A stretch of 63,294 nt of DNA, counting the filler, from Octopus bimaculoides (taxonomy: Eukaryota), in assembly GCF_001194135.2 (NCBI RefSeq). It is 7 parts of 6 records of this genome, joined end to end, with 100 filler letters (N's around TTAATTAATTAA, not from the genome) between each part and the next. Parts side by side here need not be neighbours in the genome. Positions count along the whole stretch, not along the records: positions 1 to 17,810 come from NC_068989.1; 6 more parts are not named here. One strand, written 5' to 3'. This document shows positions 1-17,810 of the stretch, one piece after another. Positions within the stretch are counted from its first letter, which is position 1. Each line of letters opens with the position of its first letter. A program made the translations under genes and the position numbers. The notes under the pieces are model-generated. The model ran no database searches. It was given only the letters and a program-made list of their open reading frames with translations, and was not told the origin of the DNA.

Positions 1-30
1 ACATAGACGTATAGATATATAAACATATGG

Positions 31-63
<33 letters not shown>

Positions 64-64
<1 letters not shown>

Positions 65-890
65 ACCCTGGTAGATAAAGCAATTAAGAATATGAAGGCA
101 GGGAAAGCATCTGGCCCATCAGGAATCACTGCTGAGATGCTTAAAATATCAGGCAGTGTCTTGTCACCCACATCGTAAATCAGGCAGTTCATGAAGGACC
201 ATAGTCAACTGCTACAATGGTAAAGGTGATGCTTTAGACAGCAATAACTACAGGGGTATCAAATTATTGGATCAGGTGATGAAAGTTACAGAGAGGGTCA
301 TAGCCCAACTAATTACAGAGACAGTTAGCCTAGATGAGATGCAGATTGGCTTTGTGCCAGGCAGAAGCACCACTGATGCTATATTTCTGGTAAGGCAACT
401 GCAGGAGAAATATCTAGTGAAAGGTAAACCTCTGTACTTGGCTTTTGTTGAATTGGAGAAAGCCTTTGAGAGGGTCCCACAATCCCTTATCTAGTGGTCA
501 GTGTGGAAACTGGAGATAAACGAGTGGTTGGTAAGAGCTGTACAAGCCCTGTACAGGGATGCTGCTAGTAAAGTGAGTGTTGGCAACAAGTATAGTGAAG
601 CATTCCAATTAGAAGTAGGGGTTTACCAAGGATCAGTCCTCAACCCCCTCTTATTCATTATAGTCCTCCAGGCAATAACAGTGGAATTCAAGACAGGGTG
701 CCCCTGAGAGCTCCTCTATGCTGATGACACTGCTAAAACCAAAGTCTTAGTAAGTAGAAAGGCTGTCAAATCACAAACCCTTTCAGGTAAATGGCTCTGC
801 TTGATCTGTAGAAAAGGTGTAGGTAGAAACTCCATATGATGTACCCAGTGTAAGCAATGGACACAAAAGGTGCTGCGATATCAAAGGAAT
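64..890 (+). mobile_element. RTE-clade LINE, degraded reverse transcriptase fragment
   Basis: Translates to KAIKNMKAGKASGPSGITAEMLK...QIGFVPGRSTTDAIFLVRQLQEKYL...LAFVELEKAFERVP...GVYQGSVLNPLLFIIVL...LLYADD, with in-frame stops. Homologous to the copy at 17525-17810. Confidence 0.9.
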
Positions 891-1160
891 ACAGTTATAT
901 TTAAGAGATGAGGAATTATGTACATTATTTATAATTGACAGATATTTGTCCTCATCTTGTTTGTTGTTAACACAACCTCCAGCCTTCATCAGGTGTCTTG
1001 GGGAAATTTTGAACCTGGGTTCTCATTCCTAAGGTATTTTTCGATGTTGTTGTTGTTATTCTTCTTCTTATTATTATTATTCAGGTCACTGCCTGGAATC
1101 AAACTCGGAATCTTGGGGTTAGTAGCCCACACTCTTAACCACTACGCCATATGCCCGGTG
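890..1160 (-). mobile_element. Short non-autonomous retroelement: tRNA-derived head, (AAT/AAC)n linker, Penelope-like tail
   Basis: Minus strand begins GGGCATATGGCGTAGTGGTTAAGAGTGTGGGCTACTAACCCCAAGATTCCGAGTTTGATTCC (A/B-box-like). The tail contains CTGATGA and matches 62247-62321. Confidence 0.6.
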
Positions 1161-1299
1161 CTGTCATTGGCCATGTCAGCAAATTTGGTTTAGATTTTGA
1201 TTTCACTTGCCTCAATAGATCTTCGCAAGCAACGCATAAGCAGGCTGGTTACACCGATGGCATAGGCCACAGGTTATAGTCTCACTTTTTGTACTCAAA

Positions 1300-4200
1300 C
1301 ACTTTCACATTAGGATAAGCACAATGTACTCTTCCATAGTACATACCTCATGTTGATACCTATACATCAGACTGAATGCTGTTTTATCTCCGAAGTGAAT
1401 ATTGCAAGTAATATTTAAGTAATAAACAGTTCTTTGGCTTTTGCATTTGATGACTGTGGCTTTACGTATTTTATGGAGTGTTGCAGTCCAGCCCAATCAC
1501 TTTGAGTGACTGACCCTGGGCTTTGTTGATGGTCATGACAAAGCTTAGACATACAGGGAACTGTACTCTTTTCATTGGGAATACACAGTCAGTTGGAATT
1601 AGTGGTATTCAGGAAATGAAAACTGTCACCAGTCCCTTGACCCGTTATGATTTCAGCCTCGATAACATCATCCAACAATTGGGTTACAAGCAACTGGGTG
1701 CCATTGTAAAGCCGAGGAGATTCCAAGTTTCTCAGTAGAATAATTGAACCTCCAAGTCTGAGTTTGCAAGGTGGCATTCCTGACGGTTCTTAGGAGTTTA
1801 AAAATTCTGTTGGGTAAACCATTACTTGTATTGGAGCCGTTATTGAATCAATAGATGCATAGATTCGCTCCTGGGTTGGAAGTTGACGAAAGAAGCACAT
1901 GTTAAGAGCTTGGACAGTGGCGTTTGTTGGAGATAAAATGGCCCTTTCACATATCCATTGGTGACTAACGTAGTTTGTTGAAAGGTCAGGGTAAACTGTT
2001 CTGCAAAGATCCTCGTGGCCGGAGACGTAGTTACCGATGGTACTTATATCAGCCTAACCATTTGCGTCCATTGGTAAGTTCCCATTATCAACATCTAATA
2101 ACTTTGCAGCACTCATCACCACCCTCTTGTTGGTGAAGAATCGAGCGCATGTTGATGGTTGACTTTCTCGTCTGGACGAAACATCAAAGATGAGAATGTC
2201 TGATGCAAACTTCTATTTCATCACCTGGTGACCTTTTGGGACGATGGGAAGAGTTTGACGAAAGTCCTCAGCAAGAAGCAAAACAACACCACCGAACGGT
2301 TCGGAGCTGGAGCGCAGGTCTTGTAGTGTTGCATTGATGGCATCAAATGCATTCTTGTGAGGCATTGTTGCCTCCTCCCATACTATCAATTTACATTTTT
2401 GAAAGACAACAGCCTCATCAGAATTCTTCCTTATGTTGGTTGAAGAATTTTCGACATGACTGATGTTAAGAGGAAGCTTAAATGTTGAATGGACTGTTCT
2501 ACTGCCATCTAACAGCATGGCTGCTATTCCTGAAGACGTCATTGCAATGGCTAACTGCCCACGTTGGTGAACTTTGGCAAGAAGGAGGTTGAGTAGAAAT
2601 GTCTTTCCTGTGCCACCTGGCGCATCAAAGAAGATGATGCCACCATTGTATTGATGAAACAAAATTGAAGACATCAGCTTGTTCGGGATTCAACCGGCGT
2701 ACTCGTTCTTGAATGTAGGACAGAAGATTTGAAGCATCATAGCATGTCTCCTAAGTAAGTAAGTGGCAGTTACAAACAGCCTCATTTTCTCATTTACGGG
2801 ACTCGACATAGCTCTTCAAAGGAAGACCACTTATTTGCAAAGTTGTATCTTCTAGAAACATCAGACTGCAGCTGTACATTTCTGGTGTAAACTGCAAATT
2901 CATGTTTGAAGATCCGAAACGGGATTGCATAAGAATGTCGAGACACATGCTGTCATGATATCTATCCCATAAAGAGTGAGGATTTTGGAAACCACTGAAC
3001 ACTAGCATAACGGCAAAAAGCTTGTGAAGAGCTTTTGGTGACTTCAAAGTGGATGCCACATGGAGGGCATGATCATATTGATCATTGTTGTCAAGAAGAC
3101 CTAATTTGGAGCAGGTCACTTTAAATGATGAACAAATATTGCCGTTGACAGTGCGAAGATCAGCGTAGCAAGTTGGACCTGTGATAACATGCAAAAGAAG
3201 ATGGAAGTGAAAGCACTCTGATTTGAGCGGATGAACTGTGTACACTCTTGAGGACATCAGCTTCATGCATTGACGGATCCCTTTGTGAAATACATCCTTG
3301 CTTTCTTTTTTGCCAACAGCAGGGAGAATAATTCCGTGTAGAATGTAGGCATCTCCGCATAAAGAAGGGTTCTCGCTAAAGAGTCAGAACTGCAAAGGTC
3401 AAAGAATCCAATAAGTGTTGATTTTCGAGGTAGTTGTGCACAGTCATGCATATTTTCCTCATTAAAATACACCCGTTGACCATTCTCCAAATGAATACTG
3501 AGGTAATAACTGCAGGTTCACGTTCATGGATTGGAAAACCAAATATGCGCCAAAATGCCTCGTTGGAAGAGATGTAGTGCCCGGTTTGGTAAAACGTGAT
3601 TTCATCTGTGGTGACATCAGAGTTATCTGTCCTAACCAACTCAATAACTGCTCAATCTGATCCCTTATGAACATACTTGCAGATGTTTTGGATTGAATTT
3701 ACACAGTTGCAGAATTCAACGTTTATGTGGGCTGAAAACATTTTACAAATCACCTTGTTTTGTGGCATAACCCATCTGTTGTCGATATTGAAATCTTGAC
3801 CATCAACCGTTGATATAATTGCTGTATGTCCACCCTCTTGTGGTGCCTTGCAACAGTATAAAGGGTAGCCATCATTGCCAGTCTTGGTTTCATGTATAAG
3901 TTTTCATGGGTAACGCTTTGTGCACTTCCCATTGTCCATACATGCAGAGTTACGATTAAGATGGCCACACGGTCCATGGATCACGTTGGTTTTAATAATA
4001 TGAAAAATGACTGTCTTCTTGGGGATTTGGCAATTCAACACTGATAATGGAATCAACATCAGCCAACATGAGTATATGGGCATGTGGAAGTCCTCTCTTC
4101 TGCCATTCAATGGTGTACATGAAACACCGTACTGGTTCAAAAAGTTGTCCACACCTAATAACATCCATCATTTTCTTACGCTCAAGGTGAAACACTCTCG

Positions 4201-6090
4201 ATATGATATCATGCCTGTCTGAAGGATTTTGGCCAGGAAATAGGTGAGACTAGATATCTCTCCATTTAGGATTGCAAGTGAAGGTGATGAAAAGATCAGG
4301 ACGGCCACATTGGCGGACATAGGTAAGAGCATCCTGCATTTTTTCATGTATGATGATGGGAGAATGACAGGAAGCCCAACATCCCAAGCCATAATCTGAT
4401 CATTTTGGTTGACTTCATCATGCAGATTGCCATATTCTTCTGCATGCAGTTCCTTTTGATGGTGTCTAATCCATTGGAGGTGTTCAGTGTCAACCTGGAA
4501 AATGGAAAAAAACTCGTGCTATATAATCTGAGAACTGGCTTAGGAAATTACCATAACGAAATCATAAAAGACGCAATAATTACCTTAGCAAATATGTCTA
4601 TACAATATTGATTGAGGAGCATCCGTGCTCTTTGCAGAATGTTGATGTCGTCTTTGTGAACCTTAAGTCTAAATGTATAAAATTCCATTTGGGAAATAGT
4701 TTTCAATGGTTGAAGATTCATTAAAGTTACCAGATTACACTTTGGTAAGTCAATGCAGTAGCCATCATCACCAAAAGGGAAAAGTAATGGATACTGGAGG
4801 ACATCATATGCAGGATTAAGTTCATTTATTCATTGGAGATGCAAGTTCTGCCATTCAAGAACAAAATCACGTTTTGAAGCACTCTCATGGGGACCCGTTA
4901 TAAGCAGAGCAATCTCGTCTGTTTGGAGACTGTTAAAACAACCCTGATGCTGGCCTGGTGTAGTGTGGTCAGCTTGAATGACAACCTTGAAATGATTAGT
5001 ATTGGCATCTCTGTGCTGAAAAGCAGTTTTGAAAATAGTAACGTAAGGGTTAACAGTATGAAGCATATTTTGAAGGAGTTGTAGAAGAGATGCTATTGTT
5101 CCAGAAATAACTGAGGCTCTTTGTGCAGTTTCTTCAGGGCCATTTCCCATAAAGTAAATCTGAAGAAAACTGTGCTCATTGCCATCTTGTGGAATCAGGG
5201 AACCAATTTGATAGTAAATTTGGCCTTGTACTTTGAATGTGGGCATGTAATTTCCATCTCTTATTGGTTTATGTCCAAAACTGGTCATTTGGAAAGTGGA
5301 ATTGTAGGCTCTTATATTGCGTAGAAAGTGTTTAGAACCTGGGTGGTCACCAAGAAGCAGGGAAGTCAAAGGTTCGGCACCGACTTTCAAATGAAGCAAT
5401 CTAACCGTCCCATTGGAGCAACAAATACCGGCAGATTCTGCTGGTCACCGCATTGCGTTACAATGGACACACACAGTTGACATGCTACCAATGATGATAT
5501 GTGGGTGGGATGCGTAGTCCTCTTGAGGGCTGTCATGGAAAGCCTTGTTAGACCATTAACACAAAGAAACCCTCGGAAAGACATGACATATTTTCCATTG
5601 AGAATCAGCTTCAAGCTTTGTTGCCCATTGGTCAGCAGTCTCTAAAGCACAGCTATTTGACGTGGAAGCAGCATCGCGTGCATGCCAACGGTCAGCTTGT
5701 TCAGGTGTTTCTGAAGCTTTAGCCATCGATGTAGAGGCAGCATCGCATGCACATCAATGGTCATCTTGTTCGGGTGTTTCTAAAGCTCTAGCCATCGACA
5801 TAGAGGCAGCATCATGTCCACGCTGACGGTCAGCTTGTTCAGGTGTTTCTGAAACTCTACCCATCAATGTAGAAGCAGCATCGCATGCACGCTGAAGGTC
5901 AGCTTATTCAGGTGTTTCTGAAGCTCTAGCCATTGACGTAGAGGCAGCAGTGTGTGCACGGCAATGTTCCGTTTGTTCAGCTGTCTCGCTTGCACGCAGT
6001 GAATGCATAACAAAAGCATGTCTTGTTTTATTGCCAAGGTTACTCTTTCTTCCTCGAGGCATCCTATCAAGAAATCTGAAATTCAATAAA
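1300..6090 (-). mobile_element. Helitron RepHel transposase, near full length, frameshifted
   Basis: Ordered minus-strand fragments: N-terminus MPRGRKSNLG plus 23-aa repeats; TFKVQGQIY; HUH Rep motif TIEWQKRGLPHAHIL; HGPCG...CTKRYP; PIF1-like helicase DAPGGTGKTFL, SSGIAAMLL...TVHSTFKLP, FGGVVLLLAEDFRQTLP, IILLRNL...LYNGT. Many stops and frameshifts. Termini not resolved. Confidence 0.95.
5668..5955 (-). repeat. 69-bp tandem repeat (about 4.3 copies) in the Helitron N-terminal coding region
   Basis: GCAGCA anchor at 5668, 5737, 5806, 5875 and 5944; encodes an ASTSMARASETPEQADRQR-like unit. Confidence 0.9.
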
Positions 6091-7539
6091 ACCTAACCAA
6101 ATGAAATCAAAAAATTTACCTCAATGGTTTTTGCAAGCTCTCAATATGGTATCTCAACAAATACCCAGTATGTTTAAAAAGGAATTTTGGCACGATATTG
6201 TCAGCACAAAAATAAACGTAATTGTGAATGAGCAAAGAAGCACGTACAGACAAAAATTATATTAAGAAAATTAACCTCAAAATTTTACGCGTTCTCATAG
6301 ACCTGGGCTGTTTCTTCTCAATAAGGATAATTGATGGATAACAAACCTTAATAACATAATAAGTGAAAAGGACAGAGAAAGAAAGTGAAAGATGTATGTA
6401 CATCTATATGAAATGGACGTGTGTGTGTGCGATTGTGTGTGAGAGAGAGAAAAAGAGAGATAAAGTGAGTGAGTGATGGTGTGTGTCGTGATGATTGATG
6501 TCTTTTAAGGTACACACACATATAGAAAATGTGACTGTTATAGGGACTGTTAGATTTGTTATTCGTCTGATGTCTCATGTTTCAATGTGGTTCGTCTGAG
6601 TTCATTGTTTCATTGTTGTTGTTCTGAATGACTGGGGTAGTAAAATGTCACTGATATATATGGTGGACATGACTTTTGTTTATTAGCATCGAACTTTGAG
6701 TGAGTGCGTTCTTTGTATGTAATTGAATAATAAATGTAATAATTAAATTGTACAACTCGTTGTCTTTTCTCTGCGAGTCTCCCGAGAGGAATACAACGTC
6801 ATTGTATAAAATGTTTACAATAGTTGATTTATGGAAAAGATTATAATGTTAAATATTTGAAATGCAAATATGTGAATGGAAATTAAGTTTAATTAGTAGC
6901 CGGAATAGTACTGATTCTTTGGATACCCCATACATCAAAATTTGTAATTCGGTTTTGGAACGTAATACTGAAATAGTGTGAGATAAGTGATTGCTCTGGG
7001 ATCAAATTAGGCAAGAGATTGGAAATTTTTTTTGGCCCATGACACTGCATGGAAATTGGCTTTTTATTTGATGACTGTTGCTTTAGGTATTTTATTTCGA
7101 TTTTATGTATATATGTATGTATGAGCCAATGAGGGAAACCTCTACCTGGTAGCTAGACCCGGTAGTAATAGCAGCCAAATCTCCCTCAAAACACCGTACT
7201 ATCTTAATCCCACAATTCTGCCTATTATGTAATTTAAATGAGAAACTGTAACTAAAGATTAAGAATATTAACCCCAAAATTCTCCACGTTTTAATAGCAA
7301 TCAATTTTTTCTCTTTTTTTGCTTAATTAGTAGTTTTTCATGTCAGCTGTAAAGGTGAAGAGGGTTAACTTGGACGGTGTTAAGTAGACGAGATGTTTAG
7401 TGATTGTATAGGGTGGTTAATTTTGACTGTTTCTTCTCAATAAGGATAACTGATAGATAAAGAATCTTAACACAATATATAGTGGAATCAGACATCATAA
7501 GAGAGAGAAAGAGAGGAAAAAAGACAGACAGCATAGCGA

Positions 7540-7775
7540 CGGTTTTGGATGACTGTCATCCTGTATTCCTCTTGTTGTTTTTAAAAGAACTTTGAGAAAA
7601 ACAAACAAGGAAGTCACAGACAAAGCTGCTCTGCAACAATTCCTGAGGGTATACAGGGTGACACCGAACCCCAATACACAAGCAGGAAGTTCACCAGCAG
7701 AACTGATGTTCATGAGGAAAGTGAAATCAGATTTTGATAAACTGTTAGTGGTGACAAGAATATTACAGTGGCAAT
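7540..7775 (+). mobile_element. Gypsy-like LTR retrotransposon integrase C-terminal fragment
   Basis: LQQFLRVYRVTPNPNTQAGSSPAELMFMRKVKSDFDKL resembles the YRxTP...SPAELxxGR region that follows the Gypsy integrase core. Confidence 0.75.
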
Positions 7776-7835
7776 AATAATATGCAAGTGGACGAGGATC
7801 CACATTATAACAGATATATATATTTATTCTTTTCT

Positions 7836-8247
7836 TTTACTTGTTTCAGTCATTTTGACTGTGGCTATGCTGGAGCACCGCTTTTCAGTTGAAGAAATTG
7901 ACCCCTGGGCTTATTCTTTGTAAGCCTGGTATTTATTTTATCAGTCTTTTTTGCCAAACTGCTAGCTTATGGGGACATAAACACACCAAGATTGGTTATC
8001 AAGCAATAGTGGAGGGACAAACACAGACACACACATACATACACACACACATATATATATATGTGTGTATATATATATATATANNNNNNNNNNTACGACA
8101 GGCTTCTTTCAGTTTCCGTCTACCAAATCCATACACAAGGCTTTGGTTAGCCCAAGGCTACAGTAGAAAACACTTGTTCAAAGTGCCATGCAGTGGAACT
8201 GTACCCAGAACCATGTGGTTGGGAAGCTTCTTACCACACAGCCATAC
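7836..8247 (-). mobile_element. SINE family A (tRNA-like head, central microsatellite)
   Basis: Matches the recurrent consensus cttttacttgtttcagtcatt...tacgacgggcttctttcagtttcc...cttaccacacagccac found at about ten sites in the window. Confidence 0.85.
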
Positions 8248-8299
8248 AGAGAGAGAGAGAGATAAAGAGAGAGAGAGAGAGAGAGATAAAGAGAGACAG

Positions 8300-9200
8300 A
8301 GATACTGATCTCTGGAAACCTGTTACAGTCTCATTCCTAAGAAGAGCAAGCCCTCTGATCCCCACCAACTACCACAACCCCTTTCTCCAGAAAAAGAAGG
8401 TAACTAATCAAATGACTTGTAATTGAAATGCACGCAGAGCCACTTTCCTTAGTTTTGTGGAGAAAGCATATTTGTCAATATATCGTTGTAGTTAAAATTT
8501 CAAAATACTCAAGAATTAAAAAATTCCATATATAGCATTCTATGCATTGGAGAGTTTGACTTGGAATTTAATTGTCCAACAAGAAAATGGTCTAGTAGGA
8601 TAAGAGCATTAAAAATCAGCATGAAATACAAGTTTGTAACCTTAATCCCAGCCAAAGCACATAAATCTAGCATCTGATAATGGGATCAATAAATTAAATG
8701 AGGTTAATCAGTAAAATTAATCCATGGACTATCTATACCTTTTGTCTTGTCAGTAATTATGTAACAGCTGCCAAAATGTCCAGTAAGGCTAATGCACACC
8801 AAATTATATTTAATTCATTATTTCACCCAAGATGCAGATTTGTCAGCAGCACAAACTAAAATCCAATTCTCCTGTGAAAAACTTGAACAAACAGATTTAT
8901 TTTGCTGGACTTCATCCTCCTTGCAACATACTCTCCATTCTCATAAATTTGTAGCAGGGACTTCCACCCCTTTGTTAAAAGAATCTCTACCAACTTTGCT
9001 GAATTCTATCCAGCACTCCATTTAGGATGGCTCTGTTAATGGCAGTTTTGCTGAAAAGGCCTATTTTCACCCCAACTTTACACTGTATTCTCTGATCAAA
9101 ATGCTTCCCAAACATACTTTCTCTACACTCCCATTCCTATCATGTGAAAATTCCCCCAATTAATCATCCAGTTCAACAAGGTAAGTTAGTGACATCCCTT
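8300..9200 (+). mobile_element. Degraded Jockey/CR1-like LINE fragments
   Basis: PKKSKPSDPTNYH (start of the RT domain) at about 8335-8380; FVKRISTNFAEF...DGS...AEKA linker-like segment at about 8970-9060. Confidence 0.5.
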
Positions 9201-9687
9201 ATATCATCCAAAACAGAATGCACTAGCATTTCCTTCAATCCTCAGCCAACACCTTAGTCTCTCTTTCTCTACAAACATGAAGCTGGACATGAAAACGAAT
9301 TCAAAGACCATAAATTCAATGAAACTGGTATAGCTGGACATGACAATTCTGTGAAAGACCGGAAGAATTAGCTGAATGCATACAAATTTGATAAGAAGCC
9401 ATAATGGAAATGGTGGTGTGATCACCAAAATGCAGTTTTTATACTATTACGATGAGGATACCTTGAACCAAGTTGGAAATATTTACATGAACCTAACAAA
9501 CCCATCAGATTCCTTGAAATTTTCATGGTGGACTATTATTGACTCCATGAGTGATAGTGGATATTTACATCAACTGGTAAAAAAAACAAGGCAGATAAGG
9601 CCACCTATATTTATGCCATCCAATTTAAAACAAGTACACAGCATGCGTAAATCTACATCAACTGATGTCATGAGATTAAAAGTAAAA

Positions 9688-9760
9688 TTAATCTTCCTTA
9701 CCAAAATTGCCATTTTCAAGAGTTTTAGTCACAAATAGTTTATCACCTTGCCGGAGTTTC
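9688..9760 (-). CDS. SGO1: Shugoshin, probable last coding exon (KLRQGDKLFVTKTLENGNFGKED*)
   Basis: Acceptor ttttcttatttag at 9761; the phase-2 join completes TTG(L), followed by KLRQGD, the second half of the shugoshin SGO motif. Stop TAA at 9690-9688. An internal G|gtaagg near 9701 could allow a further exon. Confidence 0.85.
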
Positions 9761-10329
9761 CTAAATAAGAAAAACAATTAAAAAACTTTTAGAATGCAAG
9801 ACAATTAAGAGGAATTAGAACACAAAACATTCTCTTTCATTAACATTTCTTTAAAAATATAACAAAGAAAAACTTCCTTTCTGAAAACAAATTTTAAAAA
9901 TTGAATCATGTTAACTTTTAATAAAGGATGAATTAAAAGTAGTGACAGCAGCAGAGAGAGAGAGAGAGAGTAAGAGAGAGAGTGAGTGAGTGAGTTAGTG
10001 TATGAGTGAGAGTGAGTGAGTGAGTTAGTGTATGAGTGAGAGTGAGTGTGTGTGTTTTTGCTTACAACTGTGCACACTTATATGAAAGACATAGCATCTG
10101 AGTAGTGTTGTCATTAGCACTTTCGTCAATAAATCATCTGCTCCCTTCTTGCCTTTGAAACTGTGTGAAATAAGAGATTCGTTATTTGAAAACCTGCTAA
10201 GGGGAGACATGAGGAAGAATAGCCAGCTGTAAAATAATACCTCAGTAACATATTAGTCTAACTTATACTGGCATGGAAAAATGAACCTAAAAATGGACAA
10301 ACAAAAACAATGCAACATTTTACAGGCAT

Positions 10330-10890
10330 AGAAAAACACAATTTGTATGGGTATAAGAGGCACCAGATGTTGTGTGCGAGAGAGAAAACTGTGCTGGTTT
10401 GGTCAGGTGATGCGTATGGATGAGGACAGCTGAGTAAAGAAGTACTGAGCTCTAATTGTGGAAGGTACCTGTAAAAGAGGTAGACCTGGGAAAACATGGG
10501 ACGAAGTGGTGAGAAAGGATCTTTGGATGCTGGGCCTCACTGAGGAAATGACAAGGGACCGGGAGATGTGGTGATTTGCTGTACTTGATAAGACATGTCA
10601 AGCTAAGTAAAATTGCTGTCTTCCACACATACAGGCTTGTCCTTTCAGGTACCAGTGCTGTGTTAATGCACCCATGCCAGGGCTGCGTAAACGCAAAAGT
10701 GCCAGTGACACATAAAAGGCACCCGGTACACTCTTAAGTGGTTGGTGTTAGGAAAGACATCCAGCTGTAGAAACCATGTATCAACAGACAGCTGGAGTTT
10801 GGGCAGCTCCCTGCCAGCTAGCTCCTTGTCAAACAGTCCAACCCAAGCCAGCATGGAAAGGAGACGTTTAACAATGATGTGTGATAAGAA
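10330..10890 (+). mobile_element. RTE LINE 3' end with 3' UTR
   Basis: RERKLCWFGQVMRM...VEGTCKRGRPGKTWDEVVRKD, then the tail gttaggaaagacatccagctgtagaaac...gcatggaaaggagacgtt...gatg. Confidence 0.85.
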
Positions 10891-13424
10891 CAATCATGTT
10901 AGAGGTACCAGCAGCAATATACCATTATTTGTCTGCTCCATCTTCCTTCGTACCTGGCTAGAAACATTGTAGCTCTTTTTGGGTGGTAGCCTTGATTAAC
11001 ACCACTACCTTGTCCTAGGGTGTTTTTAGCAGAATTCACTCTATTACAAGCAGGATACTGGCCTGAAGATAGCTTGATATGTACATTGCCTCCCCCACCA
11101 CCCTCAGAGGTTCATCAAAAGTCATAGCACTCCTTTCCATCTCTGATTAAGCCATAAATCCATAAATATAGGCAAAAATCTTTAACCAGAAATGTTATCT
11201 TAACCTTTTCTCATACCCAAACTACATTTTATCCCAAATGACTATATCTTCATCTGATTGCCATCCCTTTTTTAATTATTTTAACCACTTCCTAAATTCA
11301 TATTTATTATATCATTCTGGTTTTCCTTCCTTTTTCATATCTTATTTTATGTAACAATACCTTACATTGATGCCAAGTAGAGAAATCCTAGAAGATCAAT
11401 AGTCAGGATCACCAACTTCTATCAAGAGTAGCTAAAATGCATCCATAGGGATGGCATCCATGGTTGGAAAGATTCACTATAACTCAAGCTCAAATTCATA
11501 ATAATGGAACTGCATGGTGACAGAGAATCATGGTAATCCACAAAAGCAGTGCGACTGAATTTTATCTATTTATTTTGCTCTAAGTTTTATTTAAAAGATC
11601 TTTTTTTTTACCCTTGATTCACAATCTATGATATGTAGCTTGTGTGTATAAATGTCTATTGCCACCATCATTTGATGCTATCAATCTGAAAATAAGTTCT
11701 TTTCTTCTTCCCACCAGTATCAAAGGCCCTGAAAAGAAACAGATCTTCATTTCTGACAAAACCATAAAAGAAAAATTAGGCTATACCAATAATCCCCCTC
11801 TTAATTTGCAAATATCACATGATCTACCTTCCATCTTACCCACTGCTCTAAATACTAATTTTGAAGTAAAGTAACCCAGCTTCAAAAGTCTCTTAAACAT
11901 TATATCATGAGCTATGTGATTGGCCCTTCAATATAATTTCATATTCTTGGTTTACATATTTAGTCACAATGGAAATTTCTTATATTAACCAATAAAACAT
12001 GTTAAAATTGGTATAAGTAACTTTCAGCTATCCATTTTGGTTATCATCAATGTTATGCCAACTTTTTCTATGTTGAAATAGGTTAGACAAGTTATTGAGG
12101 CAATACTCTATGGTCACATACCCTTCCAGTTGCCAACCTTACTTGCATTTCAAATATTTTTATTGCACTGATCTTCAAACATCAAAACCAATGAAACTAC
12201 TAAGCTACAGGCTGTGTTGTTCACAGGAGTCATAAACAAATGTCACTGCAGCTCAAATAGTGTTTGTCGAGATATGTAGAAGGGCTGTGCCATGACTTTT
12301 GCAGAACCTCTGAAGCTGGTAGGGCAAACAATGGAGACATCAAGTTATCCTCAGACCAGTGACCTGCTTATAACAGAGTGAACTCTGCTAAAAACACCCA
12401 AATGTGGTATCAGGAGACTATAAAGTAGTTTTACTACCCAAGAAGAGGTACAGTATAACAGGGTTCTATCTACCCAGTTTCATTTACAAGGCTTTAGTCA
12501 ACCAACTACACACACACAATAGGCTTCCATACAGCTTCTGGCAACTGAATTTCATTTGCAGGACATTGATCAGCATGAAGTTATAATAGAAGACTTTGCC
12601 CAAAATACTTCAGACCAAATAAGTGCAAAGGAAACTTTGCAACTACACAGCTATGTTTGCACCAATTCTATCATCATCAAATTTAGTATCTAATAAAATT
12701 TGAATGATCTTCATGCATCTGTGAATTTGAGAAAAAAAACAAAAAAAAAAAACAGGAATGACTTACGCAGACATGACTGACAACAGTTAGCTCAGAAAAC
12801 AAATTTGAAGGTTATCTTTTTGGGGGGAATATTGAAAATACAGGTAGAAAATGTTACAGTTCCACTGTAGACAACTCTAGCAGTAATAATTTCCTTTATC
12901 AGTAGTGGTGAAAATGAAATTGAAGCAATTCATGAAGTAAGTGATGCTTTGCTGTAATATCACTTGGTTTACAAGACTAATACAAAATTGAGAGAGAGAT
13001 TTTTAATATATACTTTTCTCAGCGGCCAGGGAATATGGAAAAGAAACTTAAAAGAATGACTCAAAACAAGGTAAGTGATATGAGCAATTGGTTGGAGCAG
13101 TTGACAAGTGAACTTTGCAACCATATTTCCTTGTCATATTTTCCCATCTGAAAGGACATTATGGATAATGTGGTCCTGGTTACAGTAAATATGAAAAATA
13201 TGAAGATAGGATGGCCATGACAGGTGCAGCTATTCTGAAATAAAACCAATTGGAAGACAGCTGAGATTTTATGACAAGCTTCCCATCTTCACCTATTTTC
13301 TGTATACTGAGTTGTACAAAAGAGGCTAAGTCGTTATAAGATATAGCAGAACAAAACTTTTACAAGTCCTAATTTCATTGACATTTTTATAGCAATTACA
13401 TTATTAAATAATAGTAATACTTAC

Positions 13425-13499
13425 AAATTTAATGCAGGCTCTCTGTATGATATTGATTTAATAGCAGTCCTTCGAGGACGTTTAACACCAAAGGTGTCC
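13425..13499 (-). CDS. SGO1: Shugoshin exon carrying the SGO motif (DTFGVKRPRRTAIKSISYREPALN)
   Basis: 75 nt, acceptor tttttcag, donor gtaagta, phase 2/2. RPRRxxxKSxSYxEPxL is the diagnostic shugoshin C-terminal basic motif. Confidence 0.9.
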
Positions 13500-15739
13500 C
13501 TGAAAAATAAAAAATAAAAACATGTTTAAAATTTTTCCTAATATAGAAGCAAGCTAATGATCCAGGCAAGTGTTTTAACAATTCAGTAATATATTTCATT
13601 TTTATACATATTAATTTGCTGAAAACACATTTAGCCTAACTGTGAAAATAATTATGTTGGGATTATACTACAAACATTTTCAACAACTCCACAACATATT
13701 ACATGAGCTTTGTTAAGTCAGTCATCAATAAGTGTGGGTATGACTTGTTCAAATGCCAACAAGGGAAACTTTACCTTTCATCAATAAATTAGTATCAGTT
13801 AGACACATGTCACAAATTTCAATAGCTGACTATATTGATCCCCAGTATCTATGTTGAAAATTATTTGCTTAGAGAAGTTCCAAACAACTTCTCAGTCTGA
13901 ATCTCTGCAAGTTTATGCATGTAAGAAAAAATTCTAATAGGATACATTTTCCAAAAGGAATGTTTGAGGGGTTGACACTTGGTAGAGATTATAAAGAGAA
14001 GTAGCAAAGGAATTAGGTGGCCTTCAGTAGAGGTGTTACGGAGGTTGCTAGTTGTACTTTGAGGAAAACGAGTGCTGTAAGCTAATGATTGTAGTCTGTT
14101 GGGTTTTTTTTGTCTCCTCATTCACCATTTTCCACAGTTACTACAATTTTGACAGGAACAAAGTCAGAGGAATGTATCATGCTTTAATGTCACATTTTTG
14201 GCTTGGTTTCTACAACTGATTCTCTTCCTAATGCTAACCTCTTTACAAAGTGTATTGGGTGCATTTTACATGATACCAGCACTAATGATGTTGTCATATA
14301 ATTCACAAAACTTAAAAGCCTTTAAGTATATGTTTGACATATTGTTATAAACATTCAATAAATTTTCATTTTCTGTAATGATCAAATATAAAATTATAAA
14401 CAGCCACACAATTCCACAACAACATAAGAGGATCTAATCCCACCTATTAAATTAATTTTATTTTGTTTGTTTCATTCTTGCCATTCACAACCATCACTTT
14501 TGGGCCATGATCCTTTTGCTATGAATTACAATTTTAAATATGTTCCAATATTTTTGAGCATCAGTGGAGAACCCTTTTAGTGTCAAGGTAAATTGCAAGT
14601 GCCTAAGAACCTGTGAGGGAGAGTATAATCTTAACAAAAACAACAATATAGGCTTTCTGGTATGGTTTCTTATTACTGAATAGTGGAATTCTTAAAATGT
14701 GGTAGGTTGGGCAGAATATAAGAAAGTGGACATTAAAGAAACACTGGAAAATGAAGTTAATTTCTTCTGAAGATTCAGAAGTAACACAATCAATAGAAGA
14801 GTTTGCATGGTGTTCTATTTGCATTAGTGATATGCTTAATACCACTAATAATACTACTGTACATAATGTAAGGCAGTATAAAATTAATAATATCTTAAGT
14901 GTAAATGTCAAAATTGATGACCATTAATTTAGAGGAATTAATCATACACATACTTTCTCAAATCATCATCATTTAACGCCTGTTTTCCATGCTGGCATGG
15001 GTTGGATGGTTTGACTGAAAACTGGTAAGCAGGGGAGCCGCAACAGGTTCCAATTTGATTTGGCATGGTTTCTACAGCTGGATGCCCTTCCTAATGCCAA
15101 CCTACACTATGACTATTCACTGAGATATATGTATACCTTTTTTTATGCAACAAATGTATTTTTAATGCATATATATATGAATGTCTGAGGGTGAGGATCC
15201 CATAATATCAACAAAGTGCAACAGGCATTGAACACAAAGTAAAGTTCTGAATAAAGATACCTTGTAGGGTTTTAGAAAATTTAAGATGTCAACAAAAATG
15301 AAGGTAACAGAAGCATTCCCAGTAACAAAAGCATACCATTGATGAGGTAACATAGAAGAGAAAATTAAAAATCTGCAAAGATTTCTCAAAGTGAAAGCAA
15401 CATCAGCCAATTACTTGATAGTACTTGCCAAATAAACTTATATATAGTAATTGTTTTGATAAGTTTATTTTTGCCATTATGATTTTCCTTCATGTCTGTT
15501 GTATTCATGTTCCTAGTACTTGTATTTTCACTTTGTCGTTAAGTGTGTGAATATGTATAAATACATGTGGTCCTAATAAAGTAGGGTTTTATAGTTTGTA
15601 GAAATAGAAAAGCTTACTAATGCTTTCAAGACCAGGAGAAGAATAATGAATTTCTTTTCTCCATGTAGCATCACATATAAAGTGGAAATGTTCTTCATGG
15701 TGAGAAGCAACATATGTAACTATGCATCATCTACATGCA

Positions 15740-16400
15740 ACCTAGACACCACACATTAAATCTGTATTTATTCAACAGAGACCTTGAGAGCATTCCCCAG
15801 CAGAGTTGTGCCAATCTTGTCTCTTTCAACAGCACAAAAGATCAAGTACTACTCATATAAAAAAAAAAAAAAACACATTACATCTCCTATAAACATAAGT
15901 GTTACTCAAATACAGCTTCACTATCACTGAGGAGCTTTCCTGGCGAAAACATCCTTAGTATTGTTAAAACTGCATCCCAACAACTAGCCAGTCTCTTTAG
16001 CACCAAAAGATATTTCCATCCTCAACAGTTGCTGACACTCTACAAGGTTCAAGTGATGCCCACAATAGAGTACAGCTCATACATCTGGGATGGTGCTTCT
16101 GCCATGCAAACTAACATTTTGGATTGCATCCAGAGAAGAACCACTCCACTGACTAGCATTCCATCACTGAAGGAGATACTTCAACTTCTGGTCCACAGCT
16201 GTGTTGATTCCTACTCTTGTCTTTTCTAGCACTATTACAATGGCCACTGCTCCTTGGAGCTGGCTGGTCTCATATCTTTACTGTTCAGGAACTCTCAACC
16301 TACTTGTCTCTATATCTCAATCATTCTTTCCCTGCACTGACCACTATGCTCAATCCTTCATCTCCAGAACACTGGCCTTCTGGAATTTTCTTCCTGCAGG
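15740..16400 (+). mobile_element. Jockey/CR1-like LINE, RT C-terminal fragment (in a shugoshin intron, antisense)
   Basis: DLESI...NLVSFNS...; LTLYKVQVMPTIEYSSYIWDGAS...ILDCIQRR; QSFISRTLAFWNFLP. Confidence 0.8.
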
Positions 16401-17362
16401 TGGTGACCAGCAACAATTTAAATGGAACAGTATTGATTTCACTAGCCTTAAAAGTCTCAGAACCTACAAGGATCATGGGCACTTCCATACCTCCCCCAAA
16501 ATCAGTGAGTGGGAAAAAAACATTATGATCAATGATTAGGCAAAATATTATGTTAATATTATAGCACACAATTCACTGAGTGGCTGATGAAAATTAATTC
16601 AATTAAGCCATTAACTAAATCTGTATGAATGAGATAGCCTCACTAGAACACAAAATATATTTCATTACTTTTTTTAGGAGAAATCTACTCCATATTAAAT
16701 ATTTATATACTATATTCTCAAGCAAACAAAAATATTTTTTACAATATCTTAAACAGCACTTGTCTTCTATATTTATTGCTGAAAGCTATTTAGAAATCTA
16801 TAAACATTTATCCAGGACCTGTTCATTAGCAATGCTTGAATAAACAGCTTGAATTGTTAGTGGAGCCATCAATTTTTTTTAACAGTGAATCACACTGTAT
16901 ATAAGGAGAATGGTTCACATACAATGAACCACAGCAGGAACCGTTATGTGGTCACTGAGCCAATGTGAACATTATTGTATTTACTGAGTCAACAAAGCAG
17001 TCACTGTGACTGCTTCCTCAGCCCACAGCCTATCTAGAAAAAAAGAGACCACATTGAATACTGTAGTCCAGCACAGACTATAGCTGTGGAAGACAAGACT
17101 TTCTTGGTCAACAATACCAACTGAAGGTTAATCAATGACAAGAATGAATCTCAATTATAGACAAATCAAACTTATAGATATTTAAGATAAATGTCAATGT
17201 ATATTTATATTCTAGAATAACCAATAAAATTAGGCAATGAATGAAATTTCTACTTCATATGAAAATAGTTCATAAACATGAAAACAAACATTTTTATAAT
17301 TTCAGAATTTGCAACAAAACTCAAATGGTGATGATACTACATAAAAAGTTTTAAAAATTTAC

Positions 17363-17499
17363 TCATAATTATCTTCAGATAGACGTTTTGAAGAATTTTT
17401 GGAAAGATTTAAAGGACTTGTATTTCTTGAAGTAGCTTCTGGTGGTAAATCAGTGAGTTGCACATCAATATTTTCCTTCATTTCACAAATTAATGTTGC
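17363..17499 (-). CDS. SGO1: Probable upstream shugoshin exon (ATLICEMKENIDVQLTDLPPEATSRNTSPLNLSKNSSKRLSEDNY)
   Basis: Acceptor ttttcttttccag, 137 nt open reading, donor gtaaat. Ends in phase 2, compatible with the SGO exon (GA+G = Glu). The S/T/N-rich sequence fits the disordered shugoshin middle region but is not diagnostic. Confidence 0.6.
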
Positions 17500-17524
17500 C
17501 TGGAAAAGAAAATTTGATTATGAA

Positions 17525-17810
17525 CAACAAACGAGTGAATCAATTTAGATGAGATGCAGTTTGGGTTCGTGCCAGGTAAAAGCACTACTGATGCCTTATT
17601 TCTAGTGAGACAGTTGCAGGAGAAATACCTAGCTAAGGATAAACCTCTGTACCTGGCTTTCGTTGACATGGAGAAAGCCTTTGACAGGGTCCCCCGATCC
17701 CTTATCTGGTGGTCAATGAGGAAACTTGGGATAGAAGAATGGTTAGTGAGAGCTGTGCGAGCCATGTACAGAGATGCTGCCAGTAAGGTGAGGGTTGGAA
17801 ATGAGTACAG
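17525..17810 (+). mobile_element. RTE LINE RT fragment, no stops up to the gap
   Basis: QFGFVPGKSTTDALFLVRQLQEKYLAKDKPLYLAFVDMEKAFDRVPRSLIWWSMRKLGIEEWLVRAVRAMYRDAASKVRVGNEY. Confidence 0.92.

Follow-up and report, generated by a model that had tools for sequence, protein, structure and literature searches.

Does the first part of the stretch examined here encode a shugoshin, and if so, had that gene been overlooked? The stretch, hereafter the window, comprises 63,294 nucleotides (nt) of DNA from Octopus bimaculoides (RefSeq assembly GCF_001194135.2), and in its positions 1-17,810 three short exons of the minus strand, here called A, B and C, join into a peptide that carries a likeness to the SGO motif. 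Members of the shugoshin family combine a C-terminal SGO motif, which binds phosphorylated H2A, with an N-terminal coiled coil for dimerisation and for the binding of PP2A and the chromosomal passenger complex, and their sequences outside these two defining features are divergent (PMC4301718). A literature search on shugoshin in octopus returned nothing relevant. As argued below, we are highly confident that exons A-C are the three coding exons before the last exon of the single O. bimaculoides shugoshin gene. The gene model is already known, in that RefSeq has exactly these exons, and only the name is missing.

Each of the three exons is bounded by a polypyrimidine-AG acceptor and a GTAAG or GTAAA donor (Table 1). 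Spliced together, they form one stop-free open frame of 90 residues, ATLICEMKENIDVQLTDLPPEATSRNTSPLNLSKNSSKRLSEDNYEDTFGVKRPRRTAIKSISYREPALNLKLRQGDKLFVTKTLENGNF, and the two alternative frames of the same joined sequence are full of stops. The A/B junction falls within a Glu codon (GA/G) and the B/C junction within the codon for Leu71 (TT/G), in phase 2. Exon A encodes ATLICEMKENIDVQLTDLPPEATSRNTSPLNLSKNSSKRLSEDNY plus the initial two bases of the codon that follows; its product corresponds to residues 981-1026 of the RefSeq protein XP_052826535.1, matches the proteins P0014 and P0017 exactly, and includes a KEN tripeptide (positions 17470-17478, residue 984). Exon B adds (E)DTFGVKRPRRTAIKSISYREPALN and the initial two bases of L71, and with them the opening, basic half of the SGO motif; exon C adds (L)KLRQGDKLFVTKTLENGNF, with the second half of the motif, and the initial base of V1067. 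Together, exons A-C account for residues 981-1066 of XP_052826535.1.

The two splice junctions put forward in the original prediction, 17363>13499 and 13425>9760, are both spanned by RNA reads. In the raw RNA-sequencing run X24, the first is crossed by 11 reads with seven start points, which skip 3,863 nt, and the second by 19 reads, which skip 3,664 nt; the latter is also crossed by one transcript contig in each of X25, X26 and X40. Exon C is covered by all 23 aligned X24 reads (23/23) and by contigs of X26, X27 and X40, and intronic RNA depth is about zero except at repeats. Exon B occupies positions 1566-1641 of a transcript contig, and the 1,565 nt that the contigs hold 5' of it equal exon A (137 nt), a 1,400-nt exon and a further 28 nt, in agreement with the gene model. 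All three exons are genuine, undergo splicing and are expressed, and the prediction of three GT-AG exons joining in phase is borne out by the sequence, the frame and the RNA.

Two observations on the RNA collections concern exon A. Contigs of X25, X26, X27, X28 and X40 never align on this exon despite a word share of 1.00, and one X25 contig runs from exon B into the last 30 nt of exon A, with a loose end at 13499; the missing alignments are probably a behaviour of the alignment tool. Separately, run X30, a metatranscriptome labelled 'termite gut metagenome', contains every sampled 31-mer of octopus exon A. This points to contamination between samples, to index hopping or to a record with the wrong label, any of which can mislead taxonomic inference.

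What identifies the peptide is its match to the Pfam profile Shugoshin_C (PF07557; 24 positions, curated cut-off 23.3 bits). The spliced peptide of 90 amino acids (aa) scores 26.6 bits (E=5.3e-6), with its residues 53-74 aligned to profile positions 2-23 of 24, and the shugoshin C-terminal motif recognised by eye in the original prediction is thereby recovered by HMMER above the cut-off. The match starts at 13480 and ends at 9751; because it crosses the B/C junction, the motif is truly split by the intron of 3,664 nt, as had been proposed for an intron of 3.7 kb. Exons B and C together give the SGO motif RPRRTAIKSISYREPALNLKLRQGD, and the motif peptide KRPRRTAIKSISYREPALNLKLRQGDKLF is a candidate ligand of H2A-pT120 nucleosomes. 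The motif lies at residues 1029-1050 of 1,085, 36 residues from the C-terminus, and is followed only by the remainder of exon C and a last exon of 19 residues.

The gene to which these exons belong is already in the databases. Positions 1-17,810 are 100% identical over 17,810 nt to CM046609.1:33,443,941-33,461,750 (GCA_001194135.2), and both ends adjoin assembly gaps, that at 17,810 being a gap of 1,032 Ns. The locus is LOC106875105, with a span of 61.8 kb, and its product XP_052826535.1 (1,085 aa) is a RefSeq 'uncharacterized protein' whose record lists no Pfam domain. The 90-aa peptide is contained exactly in XP_052826535.1, in A0A0L8GSC6 (652 aa, partial) and in UPI00071C1EEC (788 aa, partial). 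A word-index protein search with this peptide gave no match, a false negative, as the collection searched holds these three exact-match proteins. We fetched the locus of XP_052826535.1 from GCA_001194135.2 (L001 in Table 1) and placed its exons by tblastn of the product. The putative coiled coil, which the original prediction had failed to find in the window, is indeed encoded elsewhere, roughly 23 kb to the 5' side of exon A. The gene had also been described as invisible to the open reading frame (ORF) track, which is right insofar as a split eukaryotic gene was set against a bacterial ORF list, but the gene was not missed, RefSeq having these exons; likewise, the statement that shugoshins are easily missed in annotation holds here for naming and not for gene finding.

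The tblastn placements further reveal a large exon in tandem copies, of which the RefSeq product of O. bimaculoides uses one. The corresponding segment of about 220 aa is present twice in the isoforms of about 1,300 aa of O. sinensis and O. vulgaris and in the Argonauta protein, and the duplication is therefore older than the Octopus/Argonauta split; it is alternatively included.

Several results weigh against the assignment, beginning with the 5' edge of exon A. At 17488-17499 no RNA read or contig aligned, even when alignment at 80% likeness was included, so the acceptor at 17499 is supported only indirectly, by its AG, its polypyrimidine tract, the same-species protein model and the orthologues (...SKVEGK/ATLICEM...); intron read-through at this point would read ...SNFLFQ, unlike the protein models. 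As for the motif, full-length XP_052826535.1 scores 21.4 bits against Shugoshin_C, just below the 23.3-bit cut-off, and the full-length orthologues score 17.5 (O. sinensis X5), 17.2 (O. vulgaris), 17.9 (Argonauta hians) and 20.0 bits (the transcript-derived protein P0015). This sub-cut-off score probably explains why the RefSeq entry carries no name. At the other end of the protein, Pfam Shugoshin_N (PF07558) does not match the N-terminal region at a threshold as loose as E<=10, a profile search of Protein Data Bank sequences with the N-terminus does not retrieve 3FGA, and BLASTP of the N-terminus against the helix of human SGO1 finds no match. The N-terminal homology would rest on one weak hhalign result and a predicted long helix of a generic kind.

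The full-length scores below the cut-off and the negative searches with the N-terminus, together with the shortness of the matching profile (just 24 positions), are what would be expected if the protein were a large, fast-evolving chromatin protein that had acquired an SGO-like basic motif by convergence, or matched a short motif by chance, and was neither a shugoshin orthologue nor a recruiter of PP2A. We consider this very unlikely, because the protein has the layout of the family, with a predicted helix towards the N-terminus and the motif close to the C-terminus. AlphaFold2 predicts a single uninterrupted helix over residues 30-126, with a predicted local distance difference test score above 90 from residue 41. 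When a four-sequence alignment of cephalopod N-termini is compared by hhalign with chain D of 3FGA, whose sequence we confirmed to be that of human SGO1, solved in complex with PP2A, a weak match is obtained over 33 columns (33% identity, P=2.4e-4, probability 44%). It pairs NNKALAHAL with NNKMLVLAL, the NN pair being aligned, and so sets the conserved NN[KR]-L--AL core against the SGO1 helix that contacts PP2A. On this comparison, the N-terminal helix weakly resembles the PP2A-binding helix of human SGO1. The other motif-bearing matches of the whole-library search are short and show the same arrangement of helix and SGO motif, and hhalign against the helix of these unrelated short SGO-motif proteins gives P=5.8e-4. 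In addition, no second cephalopod candidate turned up in the searches.

Comparison with other cephalopods supports the assignment to the shugoshin family and bears on whether the gene is functional. In HMMER library searches, the O. sinensis protein of LOC115216772 (1,080 aa; isoforms X1-X5) is 87% identical over all 90 aa, and an orthologue of 1,260 aa is found in Argonauta hians. The SGO motif, the NN[KR]ALA.ALQ helix and a terminal RxxLxxxxN are all preserved in the proteins of O. sinensis, O. vulgaris (A0AA36B610/CAI9728244.1) and Argonauta hians and in two cephalopod proteins derived from transcripts. The O. vulgaris orthologue is already named 'Shugoshin C-terminal domain-containing protein' in UniRef/UniProt. 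Longer isoforms of O. sinensis and O. vulgaris (1,298-1,313 aa) include both copies of the 220-aa segment, and O. sinensis X5 has an alternative C-terminal tail. Since transposons and assembly gaps abound at the locus, one might ask whether the exons belong to a pseudogene that is still transcribed, or to a decaying copy of a shugoshin gene that lies elsewhere. That reading is extremely improbable: the frame is intact across the 1,085-aa model; octopods and the two other cephalopod transcripts preserve the SGO motif, the helix and the D-box-like (destruction-box-like) motif at the end of the protein; several independent runs agree in showing correct splicing; and no other O. bimaculoides paralogue was retrieved.

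Human SGO1 and SGO2 resemble the octopus protein in layout, with a C-terminal ..SY.EP.L..KLR.GD, with KEN and D-box-type degrons, which in the octopus protein are candidates, and with an N-terminal helix whose NN-x-L-x-x-AL core is weakly matched by the predicted octopus helix. Outside the two motifs, however, similarity to the human proteins is nil, and the octopus N-terminus fails Shugoshin_N. With 1,085 aa, the octopus protein is nearer in length to human SGO2 (about 1,265 aa) than to SGO1 (about 561 aa), and Drosophila MEI-S332 (about 400 aa) is far shorter. MEI-S332, founder of the family among invertebrates and sole shugoshin in its genome, has a coiled coil and a basic C-terminal motif (PMC4301718).

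Where the gene ends was the point on which the original prediction went astray. It had set the lower bound at 9688 and treated exon C as the end of the gene, whereas the in-frame TAA at 9688-9690 is intronic: the donor GT at 9701-9700 is used, and the coding sequence goes on into an exon beyond position 1. The contigs of X26, X27 and X40 all exit at 9702 and extend for 149-167 nt of sequence that is not present in positions 1-17,810, and RNA depth directly below 9702 is about 0-0.5. Neither the last-exon tail nor the upstream peptide is encoded in positions 1-17,810, as judged by RNA contigs, exact peptide search and tblastn of P0014 and P0017. Because contigs run past 9702, depth is near zero below it and the tail is not encoded there, exon C is an internal exon. 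The last intron measures about 15.1 kb, including an assembly gap of 2.7 kb. A genuine isoform with exon C read through to that TAA (...ENGNFGKED), as an alternative terminal exon, would draw on the stop lying in frame four codons into the intron and on the tail of O. sinensis isoform X5, which differs after ...ENGNF and indicates that alternative 3' ends occur in the genus. Given the loss of RNA depth at 9702, the exit of the contigs and the continuation of all three O. bimaculoides protein records (3/3) with the 19-residue tail VCKDEVKKRNALENVTNMN, we give such an isoform very little credence.

With the last exon in place beyond position 1, the protein ends in RNALENVTNMN, of which RNALENVTN (residues 1075-1083) is a perfect match to RxxLxxxxN, the D-box consensus. 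Comparison of six cephalopod proteins shows this terminal RxxLxxxxN in every one (6/6), and the KEN at residue 984 is kept in Octopus and Argonauta and absent from the two other cephalopod transcripts. In human Sgo1, destruction is mediated by KEN and D box (PMC4301718). The two octopus motifs, which flank the SGO motif, are plausible candidate degrons of the anaphase-promoting complex/cyclosome (APC/C) as motif matches; unlike human SGO1 and SGO2, the octopus protein has its D-box-like motif at the very end.

By analogy with characterized shugoshins, the SGO motif RPRRTAIKSISYREPALNLKLRQGD would dock the protein on pericentromeric nucleosomes carrying Bub1-phosphorylated H2A, and the N-terminal helix would dimerise and recruit PP2A-B56, the chromosomal passenger complex or both. 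Local dephosphorylation would then keep centromeric cohesin unphosphorylated and protected until anaphase, when the KEN and the D-box-like motif may serve as APC/C degrons for removal of the protein. Every biochemical step of this scheme is borrowed from family homology. It seems to us unlikely that cephalopod shugoshin should be set apart as a structurally unusual form, on the strength of its 1,085-1,313 aa, its alternatively included duplication of about 220 aa, its Pfam-divergent helix and the invariant D-box-like motif that directly follows the SGO motif and forms its last nine residues. On that reading, if the terminal degron and the H2A-binding motif competed or cooperated, release from chromatin could be coupled to destruction by the APC/C, an arrangement not known to be described for the shugoshins of yeast, fly and human.

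Table 1. Exons and introns of LOC106875105. Plain coordinates are window positions; those preceded by L001 refer to the fetched locus. A slash marks the exon boundary.
Feature	Coordinates	Strand	Details
Exon A	17363-17499	minus	137 nt, phase 0 start; acceptor ...TTTTCCAG/, donor /GTAAAT
Exon B	13425-13499	minus	75 nt; acceptor ...TTTTTCAG/, donor /GTAAGT
Exon C	9702-9760	minus	59 nt; acceptor ...CTTATTTAG/, donor /GTAAGG
Intron A/B	13500-17362	minus	3,863 nt, GT..AG; RNA-sequencing joint 'CT..AC' on plus strand
Intron B/C	9761-13424	minus	3,664 nt, GT..AG; RNA-sequencing joint 'CT..AC' on plus strand
Last intron, first 9.7 kb	1-9701	minus	transposon remains and microsatellites
Intron 5' of exon A, its 3' end	17500-17810	minus	carries a plus-strand reverse-transcriptase fragment (17554-17810)
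Last exon	L001 63718-63776	minus strand of window	19 residues, VCKDEVKKRNALENVTNMN, then stop; about 5.4 kb beyond position 1
N-terminal helix exon	L001 17373-17585	minus strand of window	about 23 kb upstream of exon A
Large duplicated exon	L001 33393-34187 and 36049-36954		tandem copies; tblastn
1.4-kb exon	ends L001 38913		upstream, with about 1.9 kb between it and exon A; outside positions 1-17,810

The introns around these exons hold repeats and remains of mobile elements. In the last intron, a minus-strand ORF at 2213-2674 encodes a fragment of a PIF1-like helicase (Pfam PF05970, E=2.5e-43), beside which the broken minus-strand ORFs at 2790-3266, 3376-3639, 3904-4164 and 4830-5399 have no Pfam match at E<=10. 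One of these broken ORFs contains ...RAYNSTFQMTSFG..., which we take to resemble the Helitron Rep motif, and the interval 2213-5399 is probably a decayed Helitron-type transposon. Further along, a tandem repeat occupies 5641-5984 (69/138-bp period, 4.7/2.5 copies, 77-80% matches). Microsatellites at 8023-8302 and 9956-10056 consist of AC/AT-rich units, (AG)n, (GAGT)n or a 30-bp unit, around a 10-N gap at 8084-8093; the high RNA depth over the two intervals is low-complexity cross-mapping, and no exon is present.

Intron A/B contains an element of about 150 bp at 14961-15111, covered by X24 RNA at about 430x on each strand and showing many variant positions. It has very high k-mer depth in the contig runs and behaves like a very abundant short interspersed nuclear element; a tRNA scan and Rfam did not recognise it, and these found no RNA genes in positions 1-17,810. 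The reverse-transcriptase fragment of the plus strand lies at 17533-17810 (Pfam RVT_1, E=4.9e-8), where it is cut by the end of the part. A copy with 99.3% identity lies at L001 15310-15587, in another intron of LOC106875105, and both copies adjoin assembly gaps. The fragment has an RNA depth of 500-900x in X24, and for this reason it belongs to an abundant, expressed retroelement family, one that is probably young.

In sum, the gene is an ordinary member of a well-known family and had been modelled before; its identification has little import beyond annotation hygiene and raises no new question. The failure of naming can be traced to the 24-position Shugoshin_C profile, which falls 2-6 bits under its cut-off on long proteins, and to an N-terminal profile that stays silent. 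LOC106875105, LOC115216772 and the Argonauta hians protein could be renamed from 'uncharacterized protein' to shugoshin, and cephalopod cell biology gains a handle on the protection of centromeric cohesion.

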